A stretch of 64,000 nt of DNA from Isurus oxyrinchus. Its lineage: Eukaryota. This document shows positions 6,791-56,684 of the stretch, piece after piece; position 1 is the first letter of the stretch, and the number at the start of each line of letters is the position of its first letter. The notes below the pieces were generated by a model. That model searched no databases, was not told the DNA's origin, and saw only the letters and a program-made list of their open reading frames with translations. The DNA is taken from NCBI GenBank assembly GCA_026770705.1, contig JANJGN010000007.1, positions 97,464,001 through 97,528,000 of the forward strand, in the 5' to 3' direction. The position numbers and the translations under genes were made by a program.

Positions 6791-7059
6791 GTGAGTGGTG
6801 CTGACAAGAAAATGGGTTCGCGTAAAATTATGAAGTGAATTTCAGAGAATATCTAACTGAAGGGCAGGAAGGTATTTTCTCTTAGACCTGATCTTCGTCT
6901 TTTCACTTGCCGTATTTGCAGTGAATCCTATCTGTTCACAAAGAGCACCAACAATTACCGGTCTGTGTAAAAAAGAGCGCCTGACTTCAGTCAATAATTG
7001 TTCTCTTACCCCGTACCTTTTATTATTTTTCGAATATCCGTATTTGTTTAATGGGTTCT

Positions 7060-8649: not shown

Positions 8650-9084
8650 ACGAACACACGGAAATAAGAATTATGAGCAAGATTAAGCTCCTCGGCCTCT
8701 CGAGCATGCTCTACCATTCAATAGATTAATGGTTAATCATGTTATAACATCAGTTCCATATTCCTGACGACAGCCGATAACCTTTAACCCCCTTGTTTAT
8801 CAATAATCTATCTAGCTCTGCCTTAGACATATACAAGTTTCTGCTTCAGTGTCTTTTGTGAAAGAGAGTCCCAAACACTCATGACCCTCTGAGAGAAAAA
8901 CAATTCTCATGATCTCTGTTTTAAATGATAGACCTCTTATTGTTAAACAGTGAAGCCGGGTTCTAGATTTTCCCATAAGAGGAAAAAGTATCTACGCATC
9001 CACTCCATCAAGAACCTTCAGGATCTGAGCAGTTTCAACCAAGCTGTCTCTTACTCTTCTAAACTCAAGTGAATACAAGACGAG
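8650..9084 (-). mobile_element. CR1 LINE 3' part, interrupted by the Penelope element; continues at about 13475-13845
   Basis: Similar to the CR1 3' ends at 36140-36710 and 45165-45600. ORF 13471-13665 (LYKALVRAHLTYCAQYWS) is the continuation. Confidence 0.8.
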
Positions 9085-18300: not shown

Positions 18301-18855
18301 TTGATTGACCTAACCCTCCGATTGTTCTCCGAAACTTAATTTCGTGTCGAAGGCCAGACACGCAGTCGATCCCTCAGTATAATATCACTGAGAACAAAAT
18401 GCAGATGGGATCCTGCATGATGTACTTAATGGTTATTTTCATTCACTGGAACTCCTTTCTTTGGCTCTTCGAGTAAAGTGCCATTAACGCAGTTTCTCTA
18501 ACTCGCACAGGACAGATTTTCGATCCGTTTGGGTGCTTTGGGGACTCAGAGAGACACAATGGCATTCATGCGCACTGTGAACAAAGTTGTATAATCTTTG
18601 AGTAAAGTATGGTGTATAATCTGAATAAAGGGCTGATGTTATCACCAGTGCATGCGGTGATCTGTTTCGCGCTTGGTTGTTTAATACTGCAACAATAGGG
18701 CCTCACGGTAAATGAAAAGTGAGAGGCTGCGTTATACCTCAATGAGAGAGGATGACTTTGATATGTCAGTGCGGCCTATTAAGTGACGTTGCTTAATTAT
18801 TTAGCATTATCTGCTCTCCAAAATGCTTACGTTCCACTTTCTCTGCCCCCTTTAT

Positions 18856-18978
18856 GTAAGCTGGACCGTAATTTCCCCCATGGCCTCGGGTCTAGGTCAG
18901 CAGCAGGCGGGGTGATAATTTTAGTGATGATGCTGTTACTGGCACTTCTCAAACGATGCAAATTGGATAGACCTGATG
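18856..18978 (+). pseudogene. Transmembrane exon of copy 1
   Basis: Encodes KLDRNFPHGLGSRSAAGGVIILVMMLLLALLKRCKLDRPD: hydrophobic run, then basic stop-transfer KRCK, then phase-1 donor G|GTAAGA. Preceded by a polypyrimidine tract whose AG appears mutated to AT (by alignment with 39101-39107). Confidence 0.75.
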
Positions 18979-19278
18979 GTAAGAGATGGCACGATCCTGA
19001 TTCACAACTGGGTTTTATTGTCTACATACAGTTCAATGCTGCGGCAGAGGGGAGCTCCAATGGTGCAGACTTGATCTCCATTTCGAGAGCAGCGTCTATT
19101 GTACAGGTAGAATTTGTCCTTTTGTGCACAGTGAAGTGATGAGGGCAAGGCCCAAACACACCAGAATAATTTCACCAGCTACCATCATTAAACTTAACTG
19201 TGTTTTTGTTCTTGGCGATAACTGAATGTGATGATGGGAACTCTGTAGGTTAAATGACGCTAACTTTGGTCTGTGCAG

Positions 19279-19320
19279 GGAAGGACATCAAGCATGGGGC
19301 AGAAACCCTGAAGCATGAGG
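19279..19320 (+). pseudogene. Candidate 42-nt cytoplasmic mini-exon, copy 1
   Basis: TGTGCAG acceptor, G|GTAAAT donor, phase 1-1, open (GKDIKHGAETLKHE). The paralog near 39527-39568 lacks the donor. Confidence 0.35.
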
Positions 19321-20477
19321 GTAAATTTAACACCAGTCTATATCAAGACAGAATATTCTGGAGGAACACAAGGATTCAGATAGTATCTGTGGAAGTGAAA
19401 GCCGAACCTAGATCTGGAAAATAACTCCCTTTCTTTTCTCCAAGGATAAAATCTGCCCTTTTGAGTACTGACAGTAGTTTATATTTTTATTTCACATTTT
19501 CAGCATTTGCGGGGAGTTTACTTTTGCTTATGACACGTGGTGTTCTGGTGTAAAATGGATACCATCGCAGCCATCAGTAGAACTGGATGTCACTTTTCCA
19601 TTGATGACCAGTCCATTCATTTTGTTCGAATATTGAGTATTTTTCGGCAAATACATTGCAAAGGATGAAGTTGATCATTGGTGTAATTTCACTCAGGATA
19701 TGCCCGGCCAGTTCGAGGATCAGGTCAGTTTCAGTTTATTATACTGAGAAATAGGCTGTTATTTCAATGTACTGAACACTTACACCATAGATATACTGGT
19801 ATTCCTGGAACATGAGAAGTATCTCGCTATTGATGGCGCAAATGGCAAATCAATTCTCAGTTCATGGAATCCTCAATTACCTCCTCTAATGTGAAATATG
19901 GTCAGTGACCCGTCAGGACAACAATGATACCGGAGTCCAGGCAATACTCCTGATCCCGCAGATATGGTTGCTGATGTTTGGCTGTTGTCAGTGACGGTTG
20001 GGGGGCTATTCAGCCGCATGAAGGAACAAAGCTAACTCGATTCTGTGATCACATTTATCCCCACGTATGAACTTTTCAGCGTAATCCCTGAACATTGACC
20101 GCGGCTGCTCACTGACAGGGATAACGCCCCTTCCCTGGCCTCAGTGCCTCTGTGAAAATAGATATCTGCTGAAATAGTCAAATTCAGAACTCGGATTTAC
20201 ATTAACTACTGGGTGGCGCATGCGCGAGTTTTTGGCCCACTCAGTTAGGGCGAGTTCCTGATAACACAGATTGTGATTGAATGTTCAGAAATATGAAACC
20301 AATTAGTAAACGGTTGTCTCCGATGTCCTTGTAAGAATATTGTCACTGGGACAATGTCATTTTCAGGTTTGATCTGCAGTCATTAAACCCACCCAATGTG
20401 TTTATTTCCGGTTGTTGTTTTTGTCTTCTATTGGTAATATAAAATATTGCTAATATTTCTCAAAAGTCTCCCCACAG

Positions 20478-20678
20478 ACCATACACGGAGGAGAGGAGGG
20501 TAGTCCGAATTCCGCTGCTCTCACCTTCAGAGAGCAGAAGAAAACTGGGAAAGCCAGAGGTGAAGAAGAGAGCACAGTCTATGCACAGGTACGGCCGGCA
20601 AACGTAACAGTCCATTGTAAACTGGGACGCTCTGACGCAGCTCTGATCTCAGTAATGTGCAGTAACAGACTGAAATAA
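20478..20678 (+). pseudogene. Terminal cytoplasmic exon of copy 1 with ITSM-like TVYAQV
   Basis: CCCACAG acceptor; open frame TIHGGEEGSPNSAALTFREQKKTGKARGEEESTVYAQVRPANVTVHCKLGRSDAALISVMCSNRLK*; motif at 20574-20591. Confidence 0.7.
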
Positions 20679-23600
20679 TTAATCTGAGTAACAGGCGTCG
20701 CTGAAATGTTAATGTTGCTTCCACAGACCAATCACGAGACCAATAGTAAACTGATTTATGCGCCTTTGTATTTAACCGATTCACAGAATGGAGCAAGAAG
20801 GAAACAGCAGAAAAACGGAGTTGAGTACGCAGAACTCAAGATAAACAAACCAAGCCGAGAACCTGGCGTTGCATGAGCAGCAACAATGTCCAGAAATGTT
20901 GCAGTTACACGGGGGCCATTCTTCCTGTTGTCTCAATACTACAACTAACTGTATGTAGTGCGCTGTTCCTGAACAATATCGTTGAAGAGGGTATTCCCTC
21001 CAATCCTGCAACTATCACATAGGCCAGTTGAAGAGGAGAAAATACAATCCCTAACCACATAGCGACCAGAGATACTTAAACTTCCTTTACCGGTTTCTTT
21101 TCAAGTATATGCAAGGGAGCTGCAAGCATTCCTAAGAATGAAGACCCAGCTTCCTGACTGATTGTTTTTCATTACTTTTGTACTTTTTTCTTATCACAAT
21201 ACATTTGAGTACATTTGAATATATCCAATCGGTAACCTACACATAGGTACTACGTTAAAACTATTCAGTACATTTTGCGAATGAATAATTCTAAAGGGTG
21301 TATACATAGTTATATTATCCAATCAAAATTAAAACACGTACGCAAAGACCTTGGTTCTCACCACTCAAGACTGCTAGTGTTTCATCAAAGACCTCTCTTG
21401 TCTTATATGTCTTCTCATAGCTAAGCTAAACCATGTGTCCTGTTCTTATCTGAGAGAGTAGTACACCTAAACTAACTTCCTGTTATGTTTTAACTCCAGT
21501 CCAGTTCTCAAGACTTCACTGCATCGTTGCACCATTTGAATGGTTCTGCCTGTGTAAATCACACAAACTGAAAGCTCCTTTGTGTGCAATGTCCATCTAC
21601 TTACGTTCAGCTGTCAGTAGGTTTAACATCCATGGCTGCTTGGAGATTTGAAGTGCTCTTCAGCAAATTCTTACAGTGTTCTCTTTTAGCATTTTTAATT
21701 TCCCCTAACAATCGTAATTAACTGAATTGGATGGAAGGAGCAGGAGATGTAATTGCAGCAAGAAACTGGCATCAGGACCTGCGCCTATTCGTGAAAGTTT
21801 CAATTCAGGAAAAATCAATGGAAACGATGCATTACTTATCATCGTCTTCACATGGGAAAGAAGGGAATTGAGGACCCTTGTCTAGCCCGATTGGAGACGA
21901 CATGACTGTTTAGCTGGTTCAATTTGACACATTGTACTCCATGGCAGACTTATATAGTATTTACAACAGAGAAGCACACCACTCGTCTCAACAGCTCTAT
22001 GCCAAGGCCTCAAAAAATCTATACGAATTTATTTCAAAGCTTCTTCAACAACCCACAATGACTATCCACCCGTTTATTTCTACCTCCTTTATTTCTCTAA
22101 CTTCCACTTAAATGTATTGTTAGTGGTGTCAATACTCACTATGCTCGTGAATTGCACATTCTAAACATAAAGCGTTTCCTCGGAATTGGATTAGCGACTA
22201 ATTTATGTTTATGATTTCTAGTTCTATCATTGCCCACATTTGTGTCATGCCTAACCTGTTAATCCCTTTTATAGGCTAAAAGCTACCATCAGATTATGGC
22301 TTCTATTAAAATCATAACAAATATGAACAGGGGTAGACTATTGAAGAAGATCCTCGATGATGTTTCAAACTAAAATAATAAATTTCCAAAAATAGTGTTA
22401 CCTCTGTGAAATCATATTCATTGTTTCCAAAAGCTCAGTTACCACTTTCTCAATAAGTGATTCTGGCATTTCCCTAAAACGAATGGCAGGCTAACTGATC
22501 CATCGTGTATTTTATCCGCTCTCACATCCATCATTCAACCCACCCCATAAATGCCCCACTTTGGCAGAACTGCACCCCATCCCCCCACACACATAGACAC
22601 ACACACACACACACACCTCCACACAACGCCTACCCCGCCCTCACCACTCTACCTTTCCAAATTGTGCGGTTACGTTTGTACATTCGTGACCTTCAGGTCC
22701 ATGTACTGGGAAGTAAAAACCAAAGCGGCCGTGATCTCTGCAGCTAACACTTCAGAAACGATAGGATACAAATCCACTATTCCAGGAGCTGTATTCACTT
22801 CCAGGGTCATTTATAAAGATCCCAGCGTGTCTGTCATTTGTTCTCTAACATATTTAAATGTGTAAGAGCGTATTTCAGCCTCACTAAGTTCTTTCAGTTT
22901 ATTAGTTTTCTATCATCTTCCAATCTTGAATATTTCTCTTTTGTCTGATACGTTCTTCCAATGTCACAAATCACTATATAAGCACTTCTAACCAGCAATG
23001 AAGTAAGTTAATTATTTAATTACCCGCTCTTTGCTGTCAGCAGTGATGTAAGTAATGATGAAGATCATTACTGGATTTGAAGAAAATGTCCCACAAAAAT
23101 ATAATGATGTCCATGGCAGGTATTGTATTTCTCGATGTTTGTGTGAATTTGGCAGCAACGTCACTAGACGTCCAGTAACAATGAGGTTATCAAGCAAAGT
23201 AGAAGCATCCAATCACATAGAAGTATTCTCACAGACAGCAAGCAAGTCATTAGACTGCACTGAATATCCTTCATTATTTAACATCATCGCACAGACTGTA
23301 TCAATGGAAAATGTAAGGTCGAATCTGAAAAAGTAGAAAGAAACTTTAGAAAAAGAAAATTGTGACCAACTATTGCCTGCCAATGGTGAAACAAGAGTGC
23401 TTGACATTGAGCCAAAGGTAAGCTGCTGTAGAGATACAGAAATCTCTGTGGCATGGTTTCACTAATCTGAATGGGCTTTAAGTCTGGTGCTGAGACAGAA
23501 GATAATGTCGTATGTCACAACCTGACGTTAGCAAGCAGGCAAATATCCAATGATATTTAGTTACTCACACATCTTCAGCTAGAAAGTTAACAGCAATTGA

Positions 23601-26494
23601 TGCCCTTAATTCGCGATTTATATTCAGTTAGAGAAGCAGATGGTTTTGTTTCTATTTAGATGGCGATAAAATAAAATGAATGCGACCTTAAACACAGGGA
23701 TGATAAAAGAAATGTGGAGCTTCTTATCATTGTGGAAATGGTGATAATCCGCATTTATAATTAAATACTTATGAACATTGTGACTGTTCAGCAACAATTA
23801 TGAGGTTAGTAAACTATTACAAACTCAGGTACACCTCATTCAACAAGATGTTACTTGCTCAGTGGTTTACAATTTGAAACTCTCAGCTGAAGAGTGAAAG
23901 TTCCACTCACGGGCTTTCCCATTGAGTGTTGTTCTGTAGCGCACCCTCTCGAGATGCATAGAATTACTGACAACAGTTTCAGACTGCGGGTTTATTCCGA
24001 GCAGGTGCAGACCCCAGACTTTGTTGTCCAATTCAGTGGAATAATAATGACAATTGCGGACAGTTACATCAATTTAGACCAAATAAAGTGGCAGTTACTT
24101 CGGGACTCTGCACAAACTCAGTTCAAAACAGAAATCTAGAAGTTGCTGCCGCAATTCTATGATTCAGTATAAGGTGTGTTGTTGAAGAACCCACAAACTT
24201 CAATCCATTTGGTGTCACTGGAGGATGACAAGAACTCCTTTTAGGCTATTAGTCTCGCTGTAAACAGCTACACCTTATTGAATGAGGGGAAACTGGCATT
24301 TTAAACAAATTCCAAGGCTATAATTACTGCTGCATAAACTCTCTAGAAGCAATAAACCGATATTCAATTTGTGGAATGTCCAAATTATTCTTTGCGATAA
24401 ATATTTCCAGCAAGGGTTAATTCTGCAATTTTGCTGCCACTTTCTGTGAGTACAAAGCATCAGGGCCTATCTCTACCATATTGCTTTCTCTGTAACATAT
24501 GTGACTGTATAACTCATTACTATTTATTGTCATTGTATGTTCTACATTTTATTTAGAAATTTATCAGTCGACTTCCAAATTGTTTTTCGGCATTTCCATA
24601 AACTTTTCATATTCATTTTGTTCATCCACTCCTTTACTGTCTTTGTATTGAGTGTAGCTAGTTGTAATCTTCTCCATATTCCCAAGTTTATCAATGACTT
24701 GCATTACTCGTTAGTGTGATCTTTATTGGCTATATTTATCCTGTGCTCTATGATTCATCGTTTCAAATGTTTCCCTCTCCTGCTCTGTTTATTTGTCACT
24801 ATTTTACTCAGTTTATTTTCCAGGTTTACATTACCATTCAAAAAAGTCACCCTTTTTCTGATTCATTATTTAGGCTTTTGCTTCCCTTGTGCTCTTAAAA
24901 TGTCGTCAAACCCTGACATGTTTTTATCGCTGTTGCCTTGATGCCCCCTTAACTTATTTATCTGGCCTTGGCTGGGTCATTTCCCCTTAATTAATCAGCT
25001 GTACCCCTCATTTCTTGGGATTTTTAAACACAGGACAAGAAAGAATCCTCCACACGTTGCAAACACCCTATCAGTTTTATCACTGCCGCTAACGTTTCAT
25101 TTTAGTTTATTTGAGGGCAGTAAACATGACTATTCTCCCTTATCATTTCAAATGTTTGTTTCCATATGTCTTACCCATACAATTTTCCCTTAAGGTATTC
25201 TGTATCATAACCCTATTAGTCTGACTGATGTTTCCTTATCTTTTATGTTACTCCATGTGGTTCCTGTTTTTAACCTCCTGCTAGTTGTAAAACTTTCCTT
25301 CTGCTACGATTATATTATCATTAATTAGTATACAAAATTACCTCTTTGGATTTCTATTCAAGTTCTAACCTGCATTATTTTATTGCTAGTCCAATTCTTA
25401 ATATACGAATCCTTCAGTTATTCCTACTGTGCCTGCATTTCCGCTAGTGTTTATTCCTCCACATCTCCATTTTCTTTTCAATATTGTGTATATTTCTGTA
25501 CAGGTAATATGATTTCTCTTCAACACCTGTTCCTATTACTTTATGTATAGCTTGCAATTGATGCATGTAATTTGCTAACTATTCCATATAGCTTCCTGGC
25601 AATTTATGCTAATTTGGAGGCTTGGAACGTTGGTATTTATTTTAGATTTTTTTCGGGAAGAAATCTGAGTATGAACAGAGTGCTTAATAAGGTCTATGTA
25701 GATGATGAATAACATTTATCGGGCTCCTAACGGGCCCTTGGCATAATGTTTGGTGGCTGCACATCATTCATCGAAGACATTTCGATTGAGGAACTGCTGC
25801 TCTTTCATCTTAATCCAGCTGATTTAAATTTTGAAGGTTTAAATTCCTTTCACTTCCGGGTTTACATTTTGCGGATGCATTCATGTTGTAAGGAGAATAT
25901 GTCTACTTCATTGAAAAGATTAGATACGCGTTAGTGGTTGCATGGTGCCAGATATTCGTAAGGGCCATTCGGACGGACTGTCAACTGTCTGTATCTCTTG
26001 CTTCAAGGTCCCGTTGACATCTCATGAGTTCTTTCAAACTCAAGCCAGTGGAGAATGAAGATAGCGCGGGGCTGGAAAGTCTTGAGGCCAGCTACCACCA
26101 TGAACCCTTGTGTCTCTCCGTGAAGAAGATCGTGACCGATCTGCATCAGTCTGAATATGGTTCAATCAGATATCAGCATGTTAAGGTTACAGTAGCTTAA
26201 TGGTTACAATGCTTCAATTCAATTCATCGAAGTCTGAAATGATGACTTGGAGAGCTGAGTTCAAATCCCACAGCGACAGATGAGGAGTTTAAATTTATTT
26301 CATTAACACATTTGGAATTTAACGAAAACTGGTAATTTTAGCAGAACAGAAAATGCCAGAAATACGCAGCAGGTTTGGCAGCAACTGTCGGGGGAGAAAC
26401 AAAGCTAATGTTTTTGTTCGATGGACTACAATCAGAACCAGATAACGAATTGGATTTTCCGAGGTTTTAAAAAGACAGCTCTTGCTGAACATTC

Positions 26495-28130
26495 TGCATA
26501 AAAATCAGGACAAATCTAATCCAGCTAATTACTGCCCCATCGGTCTGTTCACTGCCACCAGCACAGTAATGGAATGTGTCTTCCACAGTGCTAACAAGTG
26601 ACACTTACACAGCAATAAACTGCACTGTGGTGCTCCGTTTGAGACACTTGACTCATTCCCTCATTATAATCTTGCTCCACCCATGGACAAAAGAGTCAAA
26701 CCCATGAGGTGACGTGAGAGAGTGCGACCTTGGAGTCAGTATTTGACTGAGTATGAGATCAAGGGCGCTGGCAAAATTGAAGTATGTGGAACATACCTGG
26801 GCAAATCTCCATCTTGTTGGATAGATGTGTGTATGGTGTATATACTGGAACATCTTGACTCAGACAGACCTCGCTCTGGGGCACACGTATTTTGCACTAA
26901 AGCTCTGATATTGTAAGGGTCTATACAGTTTACAGTATCCAGTGGCTTCAGCCGTTCCCTGGAATCACCTGGAGTGAATTAAAATCTGACACATGGACCT
27001 GAGGAAGTGGCCAAGATGGATCATCCACTCTGAATTTCTGACTGAAGACTTTTGTAAATGTCTTTCATGTGAATGTATTGAGCTCGCTGATCATTGAGAT
27101 TGGGGAAATTAGTGGAGCCTCCTCCTATGCTTAGCTGTTTAATATTCTACCACCATTCTTGAAGGTATGTAGCATGACAACAGATCTTCAATCTGGCATA
27201 TTAGTTTCTGGATGGTTAAGGCCTGTTGATCGCATTTTACTCCCGCTATTTGGAAAGCCTGCACTACTGTGCTGTAGTGTCACTAGGAACATACTTCATT
27301 TTGAATGTGTTTAACACTGCTGTGGGTTTGCCTCCTCCGCTGTTGAATGAACCACATTTGCTCTCCTAGCTTGATGCCTGTATTGCAGTGTGAGACATAC
27401 TAGGCCAAGAGATTACAGATTGTGGTTCAACATAATTCATTTGCCACTGATGGCCCCCAATTCTGCAAAGAAGCCCAGTTATGAGCTCCTAAATCAATTT
27501 TGACACTATCATATTTAGTGTGGTGCGCCTGCCACACAATAAAATGGAAGATATTCACAGTGTGATTAAGATTGTGTGATGGTCAGTATGACCAATTCTG
27601 CCTTCGATGGATGCACCCACGACAGGAAATTTGATGAGGGCTAGGGAAAGTGCGTTGTTTGCCTCTTGATGTTTCTCTCAACAACTATCACAGGGCTAGA
27701 CTAGCAAATATGTCTTTCAGGAAGTGACCTATTTGGTCAGTATATGTAATACCGAGCTATCTATCAAGCTGGGCAATGAAGCCCGCCATCCTGAGGAGAT
27801 TCCCTGCCCTTGCTACTCTCAGTGCATCTTCAATGCAACGTTCAGAATGGAGGAGTGCTGATTTATGAATCGAGGGACTGTGCTTGGTGGCAATCAGCAG
27901 GGAATATTCATTGCGCAATTTTGACTTCACACCATTACACTTCATGGACTCCAAGGTCGACGTTGAGGACTCCCAGGTCAACCTTTTCCCGCATGAGCCG
28001 TGACATGTGGTGGATCTGTCCGGCCGGTGGGGCATGACCTAACCAGAGTTAGTGATGGAGGTGCCTGAGACATTGGCTCAATGGTGTGATTCACCGAGTG
28101 TGATCATTTCTGTATGTTATTTGAATAATT
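26495..28130. mobile_element. Ancient rearranged LINE relic shared with unit 3 (about 52535-54180)
   Basis: + strand QDKSNPANYCPIGL (RT region) followed by minus-strand endonuclease-like sequence similar to 62400-63550. Confidence 0.65.
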
Positions 28131-28989
28131 ATTGTTACTAGACAGTCTTCATACAATAGCAAACTATTTTCCTGTGCTCACACCACAGCTTTACATTTTC
28201 TACAGAGCTAAATTTGAATCTGAAACACGGGTCACGATCAGGTCTGCTGAAATGATTCTGATAGATCTGTTGGTGTTCAGGCCTCTCTGTCATCACAGCA
28301 TTTGGAGTTTTGCTCTTTTATCTGTTCTTCCTAAGAAGCTGACCTTGGATTTCCCACTGATGCCGCAATTATACATTACGCACTTGCTTCACTTAAGGAT
28401 ATCCACTTTAGATATTCTTCCTGACCTCTTCACAGTTTGATTTCCAACTTACACTTTGAATTGGGCCATGTGCCTACACACACAACTTTTTTTGAACTTC
28501 TACAGCTTTTAACTTTTCAAAATTTAGAAAAGATGTAAAGTACGTTTCGGAAAGTTATATTAAGTTGATGATTATGAGTTGGTAACCCATATCCAGTTGC
28601 TCATATGCACAAGAAACGCCGACGCATATAGTCACAAACATGCATCTGCACACACCTGCATGCAAACTGGAAAACTTACCTAAGAAGTCAGTGGAAGGGA
28701 GTAGAACACACGCTTAAAAGACAGCACAGGGAGACAAAACAAATATAACATATACTTAACTCATAAACTCATCCATAGGGAAATACAAAGAGAGCCAAAG
28801 CTCACATAACACGCACACAATATAGCCAAGTTCTGGGGAACTCACACAAAGAACTTACATAAGCAGAAAAAACGCTCATACATGCAAAACTGAGGGGCTT
28901 GCCTGCAAAGTCACTCCAACAGTCGCTCTAATTGGTTACCAGGGAAAGTACAACTAACACTCCGATATACACAAACACATCAATAGACT

Positions 28990-30475
28990 GTCATGCTATC
29001 GCCTAGTTGCCAGCAGCACAATCACACGGCCACCAGCAGCGTTCCGCATTCATCAGTGGCACCATTAGCCAGTAGCCAGCAGAATGACTCTGCTATGGTA
29101 AACATTACCAAGGTACCAACAGCAGTATCCAATCATCATCAGAGGTAACCAGAAATGAGTACGGCCATCAGTCTGTCCACCAGCAGCAATCAGTCAACAG
29201 TAGAAACACACCAGTTACCAGCAGCATCACATAATTTCAGACGTGACATACAAACACCTGCCGAAAAACTAGCAGTTTCACTTAATGACAAGCAGCACCA
29301 TGGCCCAGCCACCAGAAGTAGCGTCCAGACACCAGCAGCAGCATCGCCTAGAAACCAGCAACAGCACCAACAGCCAGAAGCTCCAACACACAATAATTAT
29401 AATACTTAAATTGACATAATGGGCATCATCAGCCAGTGATGAGCGGTGCAATCACTCAGCCCTCAGCAATAACATTACCCAATCAACAGCAGTGGCATTA
29501 CTCACCCATCAGCAATAACATCACCCAGGCACCTGCAATGACATCAGCCCATCTCCAGCAGCGGATTTTCCGAGTCACCAGCAATTGCAGCACTCAGTCA
29601 CAAGCAAAAGCATTAAACAGCCGTCAGCAATGGTATCATTCAGCAAGCAGGATTATTATTACCAGCCATCAACAGGTGCACATCTCAATCACAAGCGACA
29701 GTGTCACCCAGTCACCAAGATTGGCACAATTTGTCACCAGTAATCTCATCAACCAATCATCAGAAACACGAAAACCTAATCGCCAGGACTGCGTGATAAT
29801 TGGAGACTCATCCTGTAACTAGCAGAAATAAGCATTAACCATCGTGCTCAACCATTCAACAGCACTGATATAGTTCAGTCACCACAATCCTTTGTCACTA
29901 ACCAGAAGTTCATTGAATTCACCAGCAGCAGCATCAGAGAATTATTAACAATGAGGCTCCATCGCCAGCATTATTGTGTTCAGTCAGTATTATCATTGCC
30001 CTTGGTAAAATGACCCAGCAGCATCACCAGCAGCATTGTCCAGTTACCATCAGAAACTCTGAGTTAACTCCAACAGTATCCAGTCTAAGGCATAAACATT
30101 CGGTCACCAACAGTATTAAACAGCCACTGTCACTCAGTCATCAACCCCATCATCAGCAATAATGAGCAGTCAACAGAATACTATATATTCGTCAGCACCA
30201 TCACTTAGTCACCACCCGAAAGGCCGGTCACCAGCAACTTCTCAACCACAAACAGGTCCATCCCCTGGACAGAAGCAGCAGCATCCAGTTCACCCAGCAG
30301 CATCACACAGACATCACGAACTTCACCCAATCACAAGTAACATTATCACACAGTCATCAGCAACAACATCATCTCGTTACAAGGAGCAACATCGATCATC
30401 AACAACATTTTGCAATCACCAGCAACTCTATAAAACCACCAGCTGCATTAGCCAGTCAAAAGTAGTTATCCACTA
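28990..30475. repeat. Degenerate CAGCAGCATCACCCAGTCAC-like minisatellite, unit 2
   Basis: Same motif and strand bias as 1830-3490; source of the Q/S/T/H-rich spurious ORFs. Confidence 0.8.
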
Positions 30476-31115
30476 AACAAAAATTAAAATCCGTTCTTCC
30501 AAGGAAATAACAAAAACTGACGAACCTTCGAGAACCATGCAATCTAATTAGGACTGAGATCGAATTCAAACATTTCTATATTTTTGGTACCCTAAGTGTC
30601 CTGCAATTTCACCGCTTCATATCTGCTCAAGGTCTGACGGATTGTCTTAGGTTAGTTTTCAGGGATCTCGATAGCAAAGGACACACTGATAGCCAAAACC
30701 ATGCTTACATTCGTCTGGCTGTGTTTGCACTGAACAACCCCAACAGCCTGGGCTCAAGATACAGGGAATAGAACCAAACGGTATTCACGGCGCCTGCAGG
30801 CAAGTACTTGCAAACGTTTCCTCACATTTTAAATTATTTAAGAGTTGCATCAATACGGAAACATTCACACCGTTCAAAAATGTTCCATGTTCACTTGGGA
30901 AACATTGAGATGCGGGTGGTGTCAACTCCCAGTGAATGTTCTCACCGCTCACGTTGAGGTGAAACCTGAACATTGATGTTGTAGCTTCAGCTCTCTTGCC
31001 CTGCGCCAGAATGCAGCACGTCGAACCTCTGGTTATCTTTAAATCTTTCCATTTTCGCACACTTCAGTTTTCCCCACTGACTTGCAACTCGAGTGACCGA
31101 TGTCATCGCCATAGG

Positions 31116-31623
31116 ATGCCTATATTCGATGTGTTGAGTTACCTCTCATCACTGACATTATTTGCACAGGTGTGTTTACTTATACCTGCTTGACAAATTA
31201 GGGAAGGGAATTTCCCTTCAATATCTAACGTCGTTTCTTCCCTTGGAATTCTGCCAATCATTACCTCTGCACTTAATTCTTGTTTGTCTTTATCTCTGAC
31301 AGTTAGTGACGGGAGCACGCTCTCACTGCTTCAGGACCCAGACCGTGTGACTCTGGTGAAAGGTACAAATCTGTCAATCAATCGCTCTGTTTGACTTTTT
31401 GTTCCCGACGCAATGCTGGATGTTTCTTCATGGAGAGAGGGCCATGACACAACTCCGGATCCGACGACAGACACAAGGAAATAAATGATGCCTTCCAAAC
31501 AAGGATCTTCCCAGTTACACCTGCAGAATGTGAGTTTCCAAGACTCCGGAGCCTATTATTGCAGCGTTAAAGAAGGGGCAGGAATGATTTCCATTGGCGG
31601 CGGGACTGATCTTAGTGCGCATG
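31116..31623 (+). pseudogene. Copy 2: leader exon (31116-31169) and VJ exon (31303-31623) pseudogene
   Basis: The leader is 54 nt (1 nt short, wrong phase). The V exon is full length (321 nt) with intact splice sites and QDSGAYYCSVKEGAGMISIGGGTDLSAH, but the first Cys is Arg and there are two in-frame stops (TGA, TAA). Confidence 0.93.
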
Positions 31624-33764
31624 GTAAGTGATGCTGAGGGGGAATGGACCCGCGTACAATTGCACAAGTGAATATCAGAGAGTATGTAACTGAATAAGAA
31701 CAGGAATTTTCCCTCAGGTCCGATTTGAGACGTTATTTTCTCGCATTTGCAGTGCATTCTGTCTGTTCACAAAGAGCGGCAACATTTACCGGACTATGCA
31801 AATTACAATGACAGCAATCAGCCAATCATTGCTCTCCTATGGGACATCTCTAATGGAGGCTTTTAATATCCGTTATTTGACCTAAATTATTCTCAGGATA
31901 AGAGTCTCTTTAGCACGCTAAGCATTAATTCTTTATTCCTATTCCTCCTTGAGGAGGTGGTCCCGCACGTTTTCCTTTGTAGGATGCCGTCGATGCTTTG
32001 AACGTGCTGGAGCCATGCTGCTATGTCCGGATTTCCGGAGTTTTGATCCTGTGATAAGGGATGGACTGTGATAAATGATCAACTCAGAATGATGCCTGAC
32101 TTGGGGGGAAGATGGAGTCCTGCTCGTCCCATATGGCGGCAGCCCTTGTCATTTTCGATGCAGCAGCTCACGTATTTGACAGATGATGCACAACAAGCCC
32201 TGGGGGTGGTGTTATGCATCTTGTAGACGACGCAGATTGCAACACCGAGACGCATTTGATGAAGACAAAGGGTGTATATTGTGGTGAGCTGACTGACGTT
32301 AAGTGTATATTTTGCGGGACCTTGTCGAGCCTTCTTGCAGCTATTCTCATGCAGACAGGAGATGACTTTTCCATCAGAATCCTGTCTCGTAAATAATGGA
32401 GATTCTTCTGGGAGTCAACAGCTTCATCACTCGGTTCAGAACATCCAGCCTCTGGCCTGTTCTAGTAACTTCGGCACTTATATCCCCTAGTTAAAAACAG
32501 AAAGTGTCGAACTAGTTGACTTTATTTCTCAACATTTATCCAATCAGGAAAAAATGTGTTGGTCTTTGAATATATTCGTGCTATGAATCACTTCATTTAA
32601 TATTCTTTGAAAATGCAGAGCTACAGTCAGGAGTCAAGTGATTCCCCCACATCCACTGCCTCCACCCAACAATTCCATTTCCCCCTAACGCACCCCGCCC
32701 CCACTGCCGCCCCCATCCCCTATTGAAAAAAAAGCAGGAATATAAACAGTGAAATTGTCAGTCAGTGTCAGGAAATATATGTAATTATACACAGAGACAG
32801 GTGGCATCAGGAGTCTGAGAAAGAAAAGTGATAGCAAGGGAGAATGGTAACAATATAAACACCAAAGAGTCGTTTACTGCATAATTAATGTAATAAAGTA
32901 ATGAGCACATTTTGTCACTGCAGATTTTATTATGCGGATAAAAGTTACTTTATCAATGACGATTTATTTCCTTCCATTATCCGTTCCATTTGTACAATTA
33001 AATAGCATTTACAGACAAACAACTTGCATTTAGATTTATATATTTTACTCCAGTGAAGACGCTGCCTGTACTTGCATAATCTACTCACGCTAACGGGAGA
33101 ATATAGCTAGATTTCTCTTAAGTTGCAATTGGTGGATATATTTACAGTAATACATATGTGATCCATTTCTGATCTATTTATGAATGCTGCAGATTTTAGA
33201 TCTGAACTGCTAAGAAGTGGGGTTTTGAAATACTGGATAAGGAACATTTCCACAAAGCAGAACTCAGCCTCAGACTGTGAAAACCGTGTGCGGAATATCT
33301 CCTGCTTCAACTTGGCCTAAGACTCCAGCAGGAAAGTGATGATGAAACTAAAATATCCCCCAGAGCTCCTGGTGCCAGGGAGCAAGACATGTTTCAAATA
33401 AGGAACGGAAGGCCTGGAGGAGAAATTATTGGGAAAAGGATCTGGGTAGCAAATAATTTAACAACCATGTGTAATCATCTTCAGATTATTTGATGATTGC
33501 ACTCTCATAGAGGTGCTGAAGATTGCGTTTCGTGAATCTAACAATGAGTGAGTCGCTGAATGGGGCATAGCCAGAGGTAATGCTAGGAGAGGAATGGAAC
33601 CAATGTAACATGTTGGAAAGATGTATGGAAAAACGACGTTTGGAATTGAAATGAATACAAATTGTAAGTGATGATATTAAGATATTAAGAGTGGGAAGTG
33701 GACTAATGGGGGTTTGCACGGGGCAGAGGTAAAGTAAATAATTAACCAAGAAATTCCAATTTGG

Positions 33765-34330
33765 TTATTACTAAAAAGAAACAACTCGATGCTTTTAGTT
33801 TGGCATTCATCAGAGCACTGGCAAGAATAGCAAAAAAGGGGAAAAGAACCATTTATTCTGTATGTGAAGGGAGTGCTGATTGGTTGTGTCTTTGCCGTGG
33901 ACAATGCACCATAGATGGTGATTGACAGTTAAGTGCCAAGCACTGTTTGAAATTTTAAACCTGGCAGTTTGGCACTGATTCGTCAAGGCATTGCACTGCG
34001 GAATGAGTCAGCGAATTTAGTTTAGAGGAAACAGGCGCAACTTGGCTACAAGTTCTTACTATCTGCAAAGAACAGGGCCCTGTGCATTAATATATGTAGC
34101 TTCCAGCACACGCGAATGTGTCAAATTGAGAGGACGACTGACACTTTGTTTTGAGATTTCCAAGCACGGGCAGGTTAGGTACGGTTTGTATCTTGCCCAA
34201 TGCGAACAGCAAAAGGAACTTATGGTCCTCCAGTCTAAGGGATGTACGGTCTGCAAACCTAGCATCACACTGGCACTGAAATACATACACCACATTATGC
34301 AATTGTGTGATAGCCAGAACATCGTTTTAG
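33765..34330 (-). mobile_element. Penelope-like 3' fragment (GIY-YIG region) of a second family
   Basis: ORF 34087-34302 NVVYVFQCQCDARFADRTSLRLEDH resembles the GIY-YIG endonuclease; a degenerate CTGATGA motif lies near the 3' end. Present only in unit 2. Confidence 0.6.
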
Positions 34331-35580
34331 CTTAATGGTAGCATACTGTTAGTGGCGAATACCCCATAGTAGCAGCGTGAAACAGCCGAACTGATGGAGA
34401 TTAGAGTGAGCTAGAAAGAACTTCAACAATTATTCAAAGACAGTGAAAAGGAAGCACTATGATTGTCAGATACATTGCCCCTCCAAGGTAATCTGTGATA
34501 AACTGGGCACTTTTCAGGCCCGTTCATGAGTTTTCGTGCTATAAAAGCAAAATGTTCTGCAGGATGCCTTTAATGCCCCCTATTTCAACATTAAGCTTGC
34601 GTGGTGATCAAATAGATTGAACCTATTTACAAGTTGATGATAAGATCAACCTTATAGAATGTTGGACGATAAGATTCCCAAAACGTATACTAACTAGTAG
34701 GCGTGCTGTGGACCAGGAGAGAGAAGCCCCTGGGGGAATCACTCAATTAGTAAATCAAGGAAGGGGAGTTCATCTTACTGTTCTATTTCATGGATGAATT
34801 TGAGCACAGAATGGAGCCCATGAAAACATGTCAGGAAATTGTTACATGCAGCGCCGGATTTAAATATTGTAAACAAATCATCCATATATCGGATATATGC
34901 GAGTGTTGGGGCCATTTTCAAACTGAGACCTCGTCGATCTGATAGAAATTGGAGTGAGCTAGAAAGAACTTCAACGCTTTTTCAAAGAAAGTAAAGAGGA
35001 AACACGTGAAATGTGGAACGTTGCATCACAATGCATTTGTAGCCGAAAACCCGGACAGATTTGAGGAACTTTCCATCAAGATTTGTTGAAGATGGCTGAA
35101 TCCCGGTAATTATTCATTTCGCCCTAATCTGAAAGTGAACATTCTTAAAGAAATTAGGTGAAGGACGCTACAGTGAATATGTTACGATGTAGCTTGTTGT
35201 TGCGTGCGATTCCAGGGCAGGGCGTGGTTGGGATGGGTAACCCGGAGAATAGCTGTTGATGTTATCGATACCAAGCGAAGGTTTTCTACTAGTTGGCTTC
35301 AGTAAGGATCGGTCTATGGGCCGTTACATTTCATGTTTTCCAGCAGTGTTCTAACAGGAATCATCCGGAAATCGGATGGTACGTACCTGTAATGGTGTCA
35401 GAACCGCTGAGGAGCAAAGCAAAATACATTGTAGTTTGATAGGGTGTCGAAGCGCACTTGACACTAGTAGATTATGTTTAACGTGGATATCGATATATTA
35501 ATACAAGTGCGCAGAACGAATGTCAAGAATCTGCAGAGTGTGATGAGCTCTGAAGTAATTATCTCGAACAGGAAAGAAAA

Positions 35581-35915
35581 TGAGACGGTGGCGTAGTGCT
35601 AATGTCACTGGCTAGTAACCCAGTGGCCGAGTTTAATGCTCTGGGGAATTGGGTTCAAATTGGAGCTTGAATTTAATAAATAACATCCAGGATTGAAATC
35701 TAGTCTGGACCATGAAATCGTTTTCGATTGTTGGACAAACCCGCCTGATTCGCTCATGTCCTTTAGGGAGGGAAATCTGCAGCCTTTACCTAGTTTGGCC
35801 CACATATGATTCCAGCCCCACAACGACGTGGTTGATTTTGAAATGGCCGAGCAAGCCACGCTTCTTAGAGGAAACAAATGCTGGTCTTGCCAGCGACGCT
35901 CACATCCCATGATAA
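35581..35915 (+). mobile_element. tRNA-headed SINE with LINE-derived tail
   Basis: Box A-like GGTGGCGTAGTGCTAA and box B-like GGTTCAAAT. The body is homologous to 63705-63955 (minus) and the tail to 60985-61040 (minus). Confidence 0.85.
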
Positions 35916-36134
35916 AAGCAAGAAAAAATAGGTAGGGTTCATTGTGTACATTATCTAAAGGGTCACAGTGAATTCCATGAGGATAAAGGCAAAACAAAAA
36001 GCATTAGGGTGTATAGCAGTGATAAGCCACTAAAAGAGTGTTCTAATGACCTTGCTCTTGCTCAGCTTCCATCTATAACACAGTGTGCAGTTCGGCTCCT
36101 GCATGTGACCAGAGGGAATGAGTAACATTTCATA

Positions 36135-36712
36135 CTATATACCAGCTAGGAGCAGGAGTAGACCTCTTGCCTGCTCTGCCATTTCATAAGACCATTGTTG
36201 ATGCGAATGTAACCTCAACTCCACGATCCCACTTACCTTTGTTTAACAAGAAACTATCTACCTCTGCCCTAAAATATTCAAAGACTCTGCTTCTATCGTC
36301 GTTTATGGAGTGTTCAGAGGGCTCATGAACCTCTGAGAGAAAGAGACTCCCTTCATATCTGTATTAAATGAGCGCCCCCTTATTTTTATTCAGTGACCCT
36401 TAGTTCTAGATTCTCCCACAAGAGGGAACATCCTCTCCACACACACTTTCTCAAAGCCCCTCAGGACCTGATAAGTTTCAATCAGGTTGTGTCTTATCCT
36501 TCAAAACTCCAACGGATACAAGGCTAATTGCTCACCTTTTCATTTTAATACAACCCGTCCTTTCCAGGTATTAGCCCTGTTAACATTCTCTCAATTGCTT
36601 CCAGTGCATTACATACTTCCTTAAATAAAGAGTCCAAAACGGCACCCAATACTCCAGACATGGTCTCAGCAACGCCCTCTATAACTCAAGCACAACCTCC
36701 CTACTTTTGTAC
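36135..36712 (-). mobile_element. CR1 LINE 3' fragment
   Basis: Similar to the CR1 3' ends at 8650-9084 and 45165-45780. Confidence 0.75.
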
Positions 36713-39107
36713 TTGGCCAGTTGATGGGGGTGTGGGGGTTGGGGGGGTGGGTGGGGGGCGGGTGGAGGAGGTACTCAATAGGTTGATCACTAGTTATCAT
36801 GATTTGCACTCTAGAAAAAGATAGACTTCACGGGGAAGTAAATTAATCAGAAAGCCTGTTTACATGTGGAGAAAATATTTGAATTGAATGCATTGACAGA
36901 GGAGGGCGCAGGAAGACCAGCCATGTAAGTGCTGGACTACTTCAGCTGTTTGGTGAATTGTCTTCTGCCATAATTTCAATAGTCTCGGGAATAAGATTAA
37001 GGCCAGTGTAGTGAGTGCAGATTCTCTACACATGTTTAAAATGATCTGTCCAAGTCCCCAGAAGTGATATATGTCATAGTGATCATACGGCACGGAACGA
37101 GACCATTTGGCTCATCGAGTCAGTGCCAGCTGTTTCATAGAGATATCCAGTTAGTCCCAGTCATCCGTTTTCCCCATACCCTTGTAATGATCAAGCTTTT
37201 CTCCAAACCTATTTTGAATATTACTATTGAAGATGCTTATATAGCGACTTCAGGCAATCCATTCCTGATCACATCAACACACTATTTATGAAATTTTCTC
37301 CCCATGTGCCCTCTCATATTCTGCAAATCGCCCTCATTCTTTATTTTTGGTTAACCGTACTGGGCCGTTTCTTATTTACCCTATCAAGCTGATCAGAGTT
37401 ATAAACATCTCCATCAAACCTCTATCAAACTTCTCTGCACCATAAAGAACGGCCCGAGCTTATCCTGTCTCTCCACATAATGGAAGTACCATGGTCCTGG
37501 TAATATTCTAGCAAATCTCCTCTATACACCCTGAAAGACTTTGAAATCCTTCCGAAAGTGTTGTGTTCAGATTTTGACACAATTCTTTAGGTGAAAACTA
37601 ATGAGTGTTTTATAAAGTTGAACAAAACTGCTTTCATTTTGATTTCTATTCCAATATTAACAAAGCCGAGCATAACTATTTTGTAAACTCAACTTAGCCT
37701 GCCACCATGAAATATTTGTATACTTATATCCTCATGGCATTCTGTTCCAGCAACCCATTTACATTCCATAATTTAGTCATGCTACCCCACCCCAGCACCC
37801 ATAGCCCCACGCCCCACTCCACCTCAACACCTCCATGTTCTTCTAATCAAAACGCACCATTACATATCTATCTGCATTAAATTTAATTAATACTGAACCT
37901 ACTCAATCTGCCATCATGTATGTAGCCGTCTGCATTTTGCCACTACCCTGTTGATTGTTTACCATATTTCTGGGCTTTTTAATAACCTGATAATGTTGAC
38001 AGTATGCCCGAAATATGCAATTCCACATCATTAAGTGCTATCGAAAAGAGTTTTCCTAATAAAAGCGTGGAAAAACAACACTCGATGCACCACCACCCCA
38101 CATTCCCCCAGCGCCCACCCCCACACCCCCACCACCACCCCCCCCCCCCCCCCCCACCACCCCCACTTCCCCCCCACCCCCACCACTCCAAAAAAATCAA
38201 CTGCTTCTCACTAAACTTTGATTGTCGTCCTTTGGTCTATTGCTGACTGTTCCTTTAATCCAGATAGCCTTAAGTTAGTTAATAACTTTAATATGCAGAA
38301 CTTTGGCAACGGCCTTTTGAAAATCCAAACCAACCATCGGTCATCTCAGGTAATTTTGCAAAAAACACCATCAAATTTGCCGAACCCCCTTTTGCCTTCA
38401 ACAATCAGTATTAACTTTCATTTGACTAGAAAATACGATTCCCATAGGCCAACTTTCCCTGGGTTACGATATTTAAAGTTTTTCACCCCACTTTAGGATA
38501 ACTTGGCCATGGTTGTTCGTATTAACATTTCTATTCATGGAGCAAAGGTGCAACATTTTTATTCCCCTGACACTGCTCAGAAATCCAATACCGCTTTTAG
38601 GGCCAGACGAAACCGAGCAGATCCCTCAGCATAATATCACTCAGCACGAAAAGCAGATGGGGGACTCCGTAATGTATTGAATGGTTAAGTTCATCCACTG
38701 GGACGAGATTCTTAAACTCTCAGAGAAACTTTCCTTTAATGCATTTTATCAATAAAACAAGATTTATTTTTAGTCAATTTGTGTGCTTTGGGGGCACAGA
38801 GTGAGACAAACAAATGCATCCATACGCATCCGCAAGAAAGTTGTACAAACATTAAGTAAAATGCGATATATAACCTGAATAAAGTGTTGATGTTATCATA
38901 AATAGTTACTGTATGCGTCGACCTGTGTTGCACTTTGGTTGTTTAATACTACTACTATAGGGCTCAAGGCAAATGAAAAATGGGATGTTCCTTGGTCCCT
39001 CCATCAGAGAGGATGATTTTGATATGTCAGTTAAATGACGTTTCTTAATTATTTAGCATCATCTGCTCTTTAAAATGCTCACATTCCACTTTCCCTGTCC
39101 CTTTTAG

Positions 39108-39223
39108 GTCGTACTTTCCCCTATCGCTGGTGTCTGGTTCTGCAGCGGGCGGATTAATGATTTCAGTAATGATGCTGTTGCTGGCAGTTCTTGTCAAGCG
39201 ATGCAAAATGGATAGACCTGATG
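39108..39223 (+). pseudogene. Transmembrane exon of copy 2
   Basis: CCCTTTTAG acceptor; encodes YFPLSLVSGSAAGGLMISVMMLLLAVLVKRCKMDRPD. The 5' end is frameshifted and the donor is removed by a 10-nt deletion between GATGG repeats relative to copy 1. Confidence 0.75.
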
Positions 39224-39893
39224 GCACGGTCCTGATTTAAAACTGGGTGTTACCGTCTAGACACAGTGAAATGCTATGGCAGGAGGCCGGGAGCTTATAT
39301 GGTGCAGCCTTCATCTCGATTTCGAGACCAGCGTCTATCGCACAGGGAGAGTTTGTCGGTTTTGTCCCAGTGAGGTGATGAGGGTAAGGACTCAACTCGA
39401 GAGGCAGATCAGAATAAGCTCACCAGCAACGACCATTAAATTTGACTGTGTTTCTGTTCTTGGCGATTACTCAAGGTGATGGTGTGAACTCCATGTGTTA
39501 AATGCCGCTAAGGTTGGACTGTACAGGGAGGAGCAGCAAACTTGGGGCAGAAAACCTGAACCAGGAGTATAAATTTAATGCGTGATATCTAAAGACAGAA
39601 AATGTTGTAAATGTTCACCAGTACATATGGAGATAAAATCAGCATTGATGCTTTATGCGTATGACCTTTGGTCAGAACCGGGACTTGGAAAAATAACTCT
39701 GCTTTTCAGCATCGGTTGTGTTTTATTTTTATGTAAAACCGTAAAATGGACACCATCTCGTCCACCTGTAGAACCATATGGTAATTTTCTACTGATGATG
39801 AGTCTGGTCACGTTGCTCGAAAGTTGGGTAATTTTTGGCGGACACTTCGCACATGATTAAATTGATTCTTGATGTAATTTATTTCTCCGAAAG

Positions 39894-39937
39894 GCAGGGC
39901 GATTCCAGAGCTCATGACCAACCAGTTCGAGCAGCAG
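39894..39937 (+). pseudogene. Candidate 44-nt cytoplasmic mini-exon (phase 1 to 0), copy 2
   Basis: Reads GRAIPELMTNQFEQQ. The paralog at 19697-19723 ends CAG|GTCAGT. It would bridge the phase-1 TM exon to the phase-0 terminal exon. Confidence 0.3.
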
Positions 39938-40668
39938 TCAGTTTCAGGTTAATTTAATGAAAAATAGGCTGTTATTTCACTGTCCTGAACACTCACAGCA
40001 TAGTTATACTGGTTGTCCTGGGGCGTCAGAAATGCTCCTGCTCATATTGGAGCACACAGCAAAAAAATCTGAGTTCATGGTATCCTCAATATCCTCCGTA
40101 ATGTGAAGTATGCTCAGAGGCCCATCAGCACAACAATGATACCCGAATCCAGGCAACCCTCCAGCTCTCGCAGACACCGGCATTCTTGTTTCCGTTTAGT
40201 CAGTGCCGGTTAGGCGCCTACTCAACCATATTCAGCTCAATTCTGTGATCACCCGATACCCCCACCCATGAACTACTGAGCGGCATCTGCATGTTGACTG
40301 GGGCTGCTCACTGAGTGATACCGCTCCTGTCCAGGCCCCAAAGCCCCCGAAAAAAGTTAACTTCTAAAATAATCAAACTCCGAACTTGTTTGTGCGTTAA
40401 ATGTTGAGTAGCGCATGCGCCAGTTCTTGGCCTAATTGCTGATAACACAAATGATGACTGCATCTTCAGATAAATGAAGCCAATTGCGAATGAGATGTCT
40501 GCGATGTACTTGTAAGACTATTATCACAGGGACATTACCAACTACAGGCCTGACCTGCAGTAATTAAACTCAGCCAAAATGTTTATTTTTCGTTGCTTTG
40601 GTTCCCCTCTATCTTCGTTTGCTGATTTAATATATAGCAGCTAATATTTCTCCAAACTATCTCCACAG

Positions 40669-40821
40669 AGCAAGCATGGAGGAGAAGCGGGGAGTCCGAC
40701 TTCCCCTGCTCACCTTCAGAGAGCAGAGCAAAACAGAGATACCAAGGCGAGAGAAAAAAACACCTCCTATGCCCAGGTTCGGCCGATAAACAGAAGTCTA
40801 TTCCAAACAGGCCCGCTCTGA
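40669..40821 (+). pseudogene. Terminal cytoplasmic exon of copy 2 with ITSM-like TSYAQV
   Basis: CTCCACAG acceptor; SKHGGEAGSPTSPAHLQRAEQNRDTKAREKNTSYAQVRPINRSLFQTGPL*; motif at 40762-40779. Confidence 0.7.
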
Positions 40822-41168
40822 CACAACGTCTGATCTCAGTAATGTGCATTGACAGACTGAAATAATTAATGTGAGCAAAAGGTGCGAATTGTCCTTGTTT
40901 CTACAGACCAAGCACGGGACAAATGGTAAGCTAACTTATGGGTTTTTGGATTTCACCGATTTCCAGAATGGGCAAGGAGGAAACAGGGGAAAAGCGGAGT
41001 GGAGCATGCAGAGAACGATATAAGTAAACCAAACGGATAGACCCGGGTTCCCTGAGCATCACCAAAGTCCAGCACTGTTACAGTTACACCGGGGCTACTT
41101 TGTTGTAACCTGAATTCTACACTAACCGTGTATAATACACCGGCAATACATTGTGCTGTACTTGATTG

Positions 41169-56629: not shown

Positions 56630-56684
56630 ATGCCCCTATTCCATGTGTTAAATTACCTCTCAGCACTGGGCGTTATTTACACAG
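56630..56684 (+). CDS. Copy 3 exon 1: signal peptide (MPLFHVLNYLSALGVIYT)
   Basis: ATG, hydrophobic peptide and phase-1 donor ACAG|GT; splices in frame to the V exon; homologous leaders at 5713, 6304 and 31116. Confidence 0.85.

Follow-up and report, generated by a model that had tools for sequence, protein, structure and literature searches.

Tandem pseudogene copies in Isurus oxyrinchus and the tail exons of a putative inhibitory receptor family of cartilaginous fish

A tandem array of V-type genes

We analysed a stretch of 64,000 nucleotides (nt) from Isurus oxyrinchus (assembly GCA_026770705.1, contig JANJGN010000007.1, positions 97,464,001-97,528,000, forward strand), hereafter the window, which is free of N runs. 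A comparison of the window with itself reveals three tandem units of 20-26 kilobases (kb) that are ~70-80% identical, each opened by an exon for an immunoglobulin (Ig) variable (V)-type domain. The region 18856-41040 very probably holds, in decayed form, the 3' halves of two pseudogenes that stand in tandem, copies 1 and 2, from a receptor family of cartilaginous fish, whose tail would carry four tyrosine sites and be inhibitory, and in which the exon ending in TVYAQ or TSYAQ would be the penultimate one.

Copy 3 provides the apparently intact 5' half of such a gene (56630-60934, + strand), with a leader (56630-56684), a VJ exon (56864-57184) and a C1 exon (60653-60934) whose junctions are all in phase 1. 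It matches the Pfam V-set (8.8e-10) and C1-set (3.2e-14) models, and so presents a VJ domain and a single C1-set domain. Only V remnants without a detectable C1 exon are kept by copies 1 and 2. The V pseudo-exon of copy 1 (6471-6798, +) has lost the first Ig cysteine (INFSGS) and is frameshifted ahead of the part that encodes YYC and J. That of copy 2 (31248-31628, +) lacks the first cysteine as well and contains two in-frame stops or frameshifts. A C1 exon was detected neither between the V and transmembrane exons of copy 1 nor 3' of the copy 2 V exon.

Transmembrane exons

Exons downstream of V were searched for singly, without building a joined spliced model. Hidden Markov models (HMMs) were made exon by exon from the tails of other species and scanned over a six-frame translation of the 64 kb; their matches are restricted to the exon places described here.

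The transmembrane (TM) exon of copy 1 (18856-18978, +) is 123 nt long, runs from phase 1 to phase 1, and encodes a stalk, KLDRNFPHGLGSRS, and a hydrophobic core, AAGGVIILVMMLLLALL, followed by KRCKLDRPD. Its counterpart in copy 2 (39108-39223, +; 116 nt) has the core SAAGGLMISVMMLLLAVLV and then KRCKMDRPD; its translation includes SLVSGSAAGGLMISVMMLLLAVLV-KRCKMDRPD. Both cores have a hydropathy of 2.3 and zero charged residues, and a basic stop-transfer segment of the KRCK type follows each. This agrees with the initial annotation, which described paralogous TM exons in both copies with no charge in the hydrophobic span. The family TM model, built only from proteins of other species, matches with E=3.5e-7 in copy 1 and 5.7e-9 in copy 2. 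An arginine lies three residues ahead of the core in copy 1 (GSRSAAGG), where copy 2 and the family have G or C.

Splice signals of the TM exons are partly lost (a slash marks the exon boundary). In copy 2 the acceptor TTTTAG/ is intact, the frame of the stalk is shifted by a 1-nt deletion, and a 10-nt deletion has removed the donor. In copy 1 the donor G/GTAAGA is intact and the acceptor reads AT (18854-18855). Position 18855 is T in the window (TTTAT/GT), which breaks the AG acceptor, and G (TTTAG/GT) in every contig of three DNA runs, which stem from two studies. The T may be a lesion limited to the individual or haplotype that was assembled, or else a mistake of the assembly.

Cytoplasmic exons

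Three cytoplasmic exons, CY1, CY2 and CY3, follow the TM exon in both copies. The initial annotation recognized only the middle one, overlooking CY1, which lies between the TM and TVYAQ exons, as well as CY3 and the immunoreceptor tyrosine-based inhibitory motifs (ITIMs) that CY3 contains.

CY1 encodes a short cytoplasmic linker. Its remnant in copy 1 (19697-19723, +) reads DMPGQFEDQ and retains the donor CAG/GTCAGT. Compared with copy 2 it has suffered a 23-nt deletion, which has taken the acceptor and the 5' part, and with them the length of 3n+2 that is required between a phase-1 TM donor and a phase-0 CY2. This remnant is one of the two top matches of the CY1 model, and the weak E value reflects the shortness of the exon. 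The CY1 of copy 2 (39894-39937, +) has 44 nt, which is 3n+2, and encodes G-RAIPELMTNQFEQQ, 61% identical in tblastn to RAITEDMTDQFDEQ of P0003, a homolog from Scyliorhinus canicula. Loss of 1 nt at its donor leaves either no GT or a shifted frame. A further ORF-like piece with AG and GT borders (19279-19320) was rejected as an additional exon, since no homolog has matching residues.

CY2 is the exon that gave rise to the initial annotation of a signalling tail. In copy 1 (20478-20588, +) it comprises 111 nt, or 37 codons, from phase 0 to phase 0, and encodes TIHGGEEGSPNSAALTFREQKKTGKARGEEESTVYAQ; the family CY2 model matches with E=1e-11, and P0003 with E=2.7e-6 in tblastn. In copy 2 (40669-40776, +) it is 108 nt long and ends in TSYAQ/GTTCGG. 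Two compensating deletions, one of 2 nt and one of 1 nt, place its middle third outside the ancestral frame, and its HMM matches are fragmentary and spread over two frames. The letters that were read as TVYAQV at 20574-20591 (ACA GTC TAT GCA CAG GTA) and TSYAQV at 40762-40779 (ACC TCC TAT GCC CAG GTT) are indeed present. That both motifs are in frame from a conserved acceptor is correct as to the acceptor, since CCACAG/ precedes both exon starts (20478 and 40669), but in copy 2 the frame is restored only through the two compensating deletions. The GTA or GTT codon read as valine coincides with a splice donor, CAG/GTACGG after 20588 in copy 1 and CAG/GTTCGG after 40776 in copy 2. In both copies the tyrosine of the first ITIM of CY2 is gone (copy 1 has NSAAL where homologs have SYAAL).

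CY3 is the true last coding exon. In copy 1 (20727-20876, +) it encodes TNHETNSKLIYAPLYLTDSQNGARRKQQKNGVEYAELKINKPSREPGVA followed by a stop codon, and contains two sites of ITIM consensus, LIYAPL and VEYAEL, 23 residues apart. It matches positions 1-47 of the family CY3 model with E=3.5e-17, and the homologs P0004 (E=1.3e-10) and P0012 (E=1e-5) in tblastn. In copy 2 (40907-41040, +) it encodes TKHGTNGKLTYGFLDFTDFQNG and, after a 1-nt deletion, ARRKQGKSGVEHAENDISKPNG with a stop codon in the ancestral frame; the model matches with E=9e-7, and with 1.3e-4 in a second frame. The ITIM LTYGFL is kept, and the fourth tyrosine has been replaced by histidine. CY3 starts 138 nt downstream of CY2 in copy 1 and 130 nt downstream in copy 2, behind CAG/ acceptors at 20727 and 40907. 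The intron of copy 1 (20589-20726, +), GTACGG...TTCCACAG, includes both the GTA that was read as valine and the TAA that was taken as a stop codon. Pfam recognizes nothing in the tail exons.

Homologs in cartilaginous fish

A full HMMER scan with the V exon of copy 3 detects proteins that are 35-58% identical in V, and those that were read are receptors with a V domain, an optional C1 domain, a TM segment and a tail, abbreviated V(-C1)-TM-tail. These proteins belong to Heterodontus, Scyliorhinus, the ray Mobula, Heptranchias, Mustelus, Carcharodon, Chiloscyllium, Cetorhinus and the chimaera Callorhinchus, and the matches to the family signature that were looked up are chondrichthyan without exception. 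Automatic names conflict, and include SIRP-alpha-like, tapasin-related-like, Ig lambda-like, NCR3LG1-like and CD276 homolog. Public examples are XP_067905922-24 of Heterodontus francisci ("tapasin-related protein-like"), XP_072135199 of Mobula birostris, XP_007902824 of Callorhinchus milii, and XP_038661939 of S. canicula ([quoted passage not shown]), which is P0003. A full-text search for SIRP-type ITIM receptors of sharks or cartilaginous fish found no paper on this family.

The V and C1 of copy 3 are 55-65% identical to the public chondrichthyan VJ-C1 proteins, and no family model has more than one C1 domain. Homolog tails are collinear with the TM, CY1, CY2 and CY3 exons of both window copies in tblastn searches and alignments. 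The window copies and the public family share the exon order, the uncharged TM segment with its KRCK-type stop-transfer, the PGQFEEQ linker, and an arrangement of four tyrosine sites in pairs spaced by 23 residues. We counted this spacing in both pairs of P0004 and in the LIYAPL-VEYAEL pair of copy 1. The TM segment with its stop-transfer and the three-exon tail order thus place the window copies in the family. They differ from its public members in being pseudogenes that lack a C1 exon, have broken V exons, splice sites and tail frames, and have lost tyrosines.

The CY2 and CY3 profiles align with each other over 32 columns in hhalign (97.5% probability, E=8.3e-12). By their sequences, CY2 and CY3 are tandem duplicates of one module, in which an ITIM (L/S-x-Y-A-x-L) is separated by 23 residues from a site of the form T/V-x-Y-A-x. 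The first ITIM of homologs is LSYAAL or PIYADI, and other homolog ITIMs are LTYASL and VEYSEI. At the last site of the tail the +3 residue is hydrophobic (VEYSEI, AEYAEI, TEYAGI, TEYAQL), fitting the consensus of an ITIM or of a sequence resembling an ITSM, the immunoreceptor tyrosine-based switch motif.

In P0003, which is 450 amino acids long, two near-identical TM-CY1-CY2-CY3 units stand behind a single V-C1. This double tail probably results from read-through in the annotation over tandem tail modules, or from the use of orphan tail exons.

Position of CY2 and the end of the tail

The initial annotation took the TVYAQV and TSYAQV exons to be terminal and their motif to be an ITSM, TxYxx(V/I). 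Neither part is supported. The isoforms of Heterodontus are informative here: isoform X3 lacks exactly 37 residues of isoforms X1 and X2 (ILRR...TVYAQ), and these are the counterpart of 20478-20588. This gap, together with the further exon, implies that CY2 is an internal, skippable exon of phase 0 at both ends. Isoform X4 skips exactly the C1 exon, so that V-only isoforms exist among the homologs. The splice from CY2 to CY3 is deduced from the homolog gene models, these isoform differences, the phases, the splice signals and the homology of the exons. In both copies CY3 opens with the codon ACC, and the spliced motif is TVYAQT or TSYAQT, whose threonine at +3 does not fit the ITSM consensus. 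Among eight aligned homologs that keep the CY2 tyrosine, the +3 residue is T in five and Y, I and V in one each.

Could CY2 nevertheless be read through its donor to the TAA near 20676, so that the mature tail would end in a canonical ITSM? The read-through frame of copy 1 is open for 29 codons, and retention of the intron would be compatible with data at the DNA level. Moreover, an intron block (20628-20690, corresponding to 40812-40874 in copy 2) is 89% identical between the copies as against ~73% in the flanking exons and introns, which could point to a role, for instance as an alternative 3' end. Still, the read-through C-terminus has no match or resemblance among the 160 proteins of the homology searches, all long-tailed homologs with CY2 continue into CY3, and the CY3 of copy 1 follows with intact acceptor, frame and stop. 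In copy 2 the frame stops after 14 read-through codons, sharing with copy 1 only VRP and one N. A tail ending at this TAA is therefore quite improbable. The conserved block, from within which a diverged paralogous DNA contig (runs X1-X3) aligns from 20642 onward, could instead control the splicing of the skippable CY2, or have arisen by local gene conversion.

Decay of copies 1 and 2

Tail and V exon alike are dead in both window copies. The CY1 deletion of copy 1 sends the frame of the TM exon into a stop eight codons into CY2, whether the CY1 remnant is used or skipped. Copy 2 has four frameshifts in all, in its TM, CY2 and CY3 exons, besides the missing TM donor and the damaged CY1 donor. 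The first ITIM tyrosine is lost in both copies and the fourth also in copy 2. Between the copies, exons and introns are equally diverged (72-74% identity); conservation that is no better in exons than in introns is the expectation for neutral decay.

An alternative is that copies 1 and 2 still contribute their TM and tail exons, as alternative 3' ends, to neighbouring genes of the array that have intact V-C1 exons. The S. canicula model with two TM-tail units behind one V-C1 would fit such an arrangement, CY2 and CY3 of copy 1 have open frames and intact splice sites, and the three other DNA runs have AG at the copy 1 TM acceptor. Yet these exons would have to be joined through the out-of-frame TM-CY2 connection of copy 1 or the four frameshifts, lost TM donor and damaged CY1 donor of copy 2, their conservation is no higher than that of introns, and no RNA contig was found on the stretch. 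We consider continued use of these exons very unlikely, and regard the copies as decayed genes.

That the exon matches are merely chance open frames in repeat-rich DNA has a negligible probability: retroelement debris is abundant in the window and short tyrosine motifs do occur by chance, but each of two copies has four collinear exon matches, with E down to 3.5e-17 and splice sites at homologous boundaries.

Proposed function of intact members

The gene order that we propose for the family is a leader, a germline-joined VJ exon, one C1 exon, an uncharged TM exon, the CY1 linker (PGQFEEQ), CY2 and CY3. The CY2 donor, immediately after YAQ, would be joined to CY3, whose first codon would supply the +3 residue. 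In functional members the four tail tyrosines would be phosphorylated, and each pair spaced by 23 residues could dock the tandem SH2 domains of phosphatases of the SHP-1/SHP-2 type and thereby deliver an inhibitory signal, on the analogy of SIRP-alpha, PD-1 and PECAM-1. In those three receptors, ITIM and ITSM-like phosphotyrosines ~23-26 residues apart form the tandem-SH2 docking unit for SHP-2 or SHP-1, and SIRP-alpha has two such units. Judging by this analogy, inhibitory signalling via SHP-type phosphatases is most likely the function of intact members.

An uncharged TM segment accompanies sites that fit the ITIM consensus, (S/I/V/L)xYxx(I/V/L), in both window copies: LIYAPL and VEYAEL in the CY3 of copy 1, and LTYGFL in copy 2. 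The suggestion of inhibition holds for the family mainly because of these canonical ITIMs in CY3. The uncharged TM and the tyrosine-motif tail also bear out the view that the genes do not encode a secreted Ig light chain.

Several points weigh against this interpretation. Phosphatase recruitment is a prediction from sequence motifs. The exon boundaries of the homologs are those of automatic gene models (XP_ records), not of cloned complementary DNAs. The TM and tail exons of copy 3 fall past the end of the window. No RNA contig was found on the stretch, and runs X1-X3 yield DNA contigs that span exons and introns alike. Apparent joints in these runs were rejected as splices, being piecewise matches of the diverged paralogous DNA contig. 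In X6, a run guessed to be RNA, coverage is limited to the repeat at ~21000-21700.

The initial annotation proposed that the family signals on its own as an inhibitory or switch receptor. This appears to apply to the long-tailed members, all of which have an uncharged TM segment, and an inhibitory role without an adaptor that pairs with a charged TM residue is the best reading of their sequences. It does not extend to three short-tailed V-C1 members, P0019 of Chiloscyllium, P0023 of Heterodontus and P0024 of Carcharodon, which have no tyrosine motifs in the tail. The inner end of their TM segments carries an acidic residue and histidine (IVDHLK, IMDHFL and IVEHLK, respectively). These proteins may partner the ITIM-bearing members without being inhibitory themselves, in the way that SIRP-beta relates to SIRP-alpha, although their TM residue is acidic and not basic.

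These results correct the gene model of the array, which has three cytoplasmic exons instead of one, with four tyrosine sites in two duplicated modules, and they show the canonical-looking ITSM in the raw DNA to be an artefact of reading through a splice donor. As dead members, copies 1 and 2 contribute little beyond their decay, and the family is already present in public automatic annotation. What emerges is a so far unstudied family of putative VJ-C1 inhibitory receptors that is found throughout the cartilaginous fish and turns over by gene birth and death.

Other features of the window

A local duplication has left an extra, partial fragment of the leader and V 5' end (GRVTPVKGTNVNI) at 5903-6052, ~500 nt upstream of the V pseudo-exon of copy 1. 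Long open frames in which Q, H, T and S abound (ITQ.PA.TS) are located at 29149-30473 and 54728-56052 (both +), ~1 kb upstream of the leader and V exons of copies 2 and 3. The two frames are homologous to each other, contain a short tandem repeat of 23 nt and have no Pfam match; they are most likely a decayed low-complexity repeat.

Decayed retroelement fragments occur at 61493-61792 (-), 50155-50364 (+), 4201-4875 (-), 9000-13500 (-) and 47000-48800 (-), and two of the fragments match the reverse-transcriptase model RVT_1 with E ~1e-5, short of the Pfam cut-off. Decayed reverse-transcriptase pieces separate the tandem units, and copy 1 has one large retroelement insertion between its V and TM exons. 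A very high-copy repeat (20991-21700) starts ~115 nt past the copy 1 stop codon and has a contig depth of thousands in all runs.

Comparison with known receptors

In tail layout the chondrichthyan family looks most like SIRP-alpha (SHPS-1/PTPNS1). The tail of SIRP-alpha contains four tyrosines, in two pairs of an ITIM and a TEYAx-type site ~23-26 residues apart, and recruits SHP-1 and SHP-2. The two also have in common a VJ-type V domain, C1-set constant domains and an uncharged TM segment, and several family members have been named SIRP-alpha-like by the NCBI pipeline. However, SIRPs have one V and two C1-set domains, and the chondrichthyan family has a single C1-set domain. Among the 60 best PDB sequence matches listed for the V exon, and likewise for the C1 exon, there are no SIRP structures. 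A search with the tail only (P0004 residues 243-342) returned six shark proteins alone, through a coarse word filter that makes this result uninformative on homology to SIRP-alpha or PD-1.

PD-1 and receptors of the SLAM family likewise have an ITIM followed, ~23-25 residues on, by a site of the T-x-Y-A-x type. A true TxYxx(I/V) is found in some homologs, namely TEYAQI in S. canicula, TEYAAV in Mustelus and TEYAGI in Mobula. Unlike an ITSM, however, the CY2 site has T at +3 in both window copies and in most of the homologs that keep its tyrosine. The ectodomains also differ, being V only in PD-1, V-C2 in SLAM receptors and VJ-C1 in the chondrichthyan family, in which the module is moreover duplicated.

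Published non-rearranging VJ genes include UrIg, UrIg2, NKp30 and PRARP (PMC12227049 for UrIg and UrIg2). The chondrichthyan family resembles UrIg and UrIg2 in combining a germline-joined VJ exon with the C1-set fold. The top PDB matches of the copy 3 C1 exon include the UrIg2 crystal chain 9dmx_A (E=7e-19, to its first C domain, C1), and UrIg2 is not among the best 60 PDB matches of the V exon. UrIg2 has nine C1-type domains, and the text that describes it makes no mention of ITIM, ITSM or SIRP (Flajnik et al., PMC12227049). Multiple C1-type domains thus distinguish UrIg and UrIg2 from the chondrichthyan family, which has a single C1 and an ITIM-bearing tail.

These resemblances permit a more speculative proposal, which we put forward as a doubtful one. 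The exon-borne module with two tyrosines might be an early version of the cassette that docks phosphatases in the tails of SIRP-alpha, PD-1 and PECAM-1, spread by exon duplication and shuffling. The family would then be a non-rearranging relative of the antigen receptors that already had paired forms, long-tailed and inhibitory on the one hand, short-tailed with an acidic TM residue on the other.

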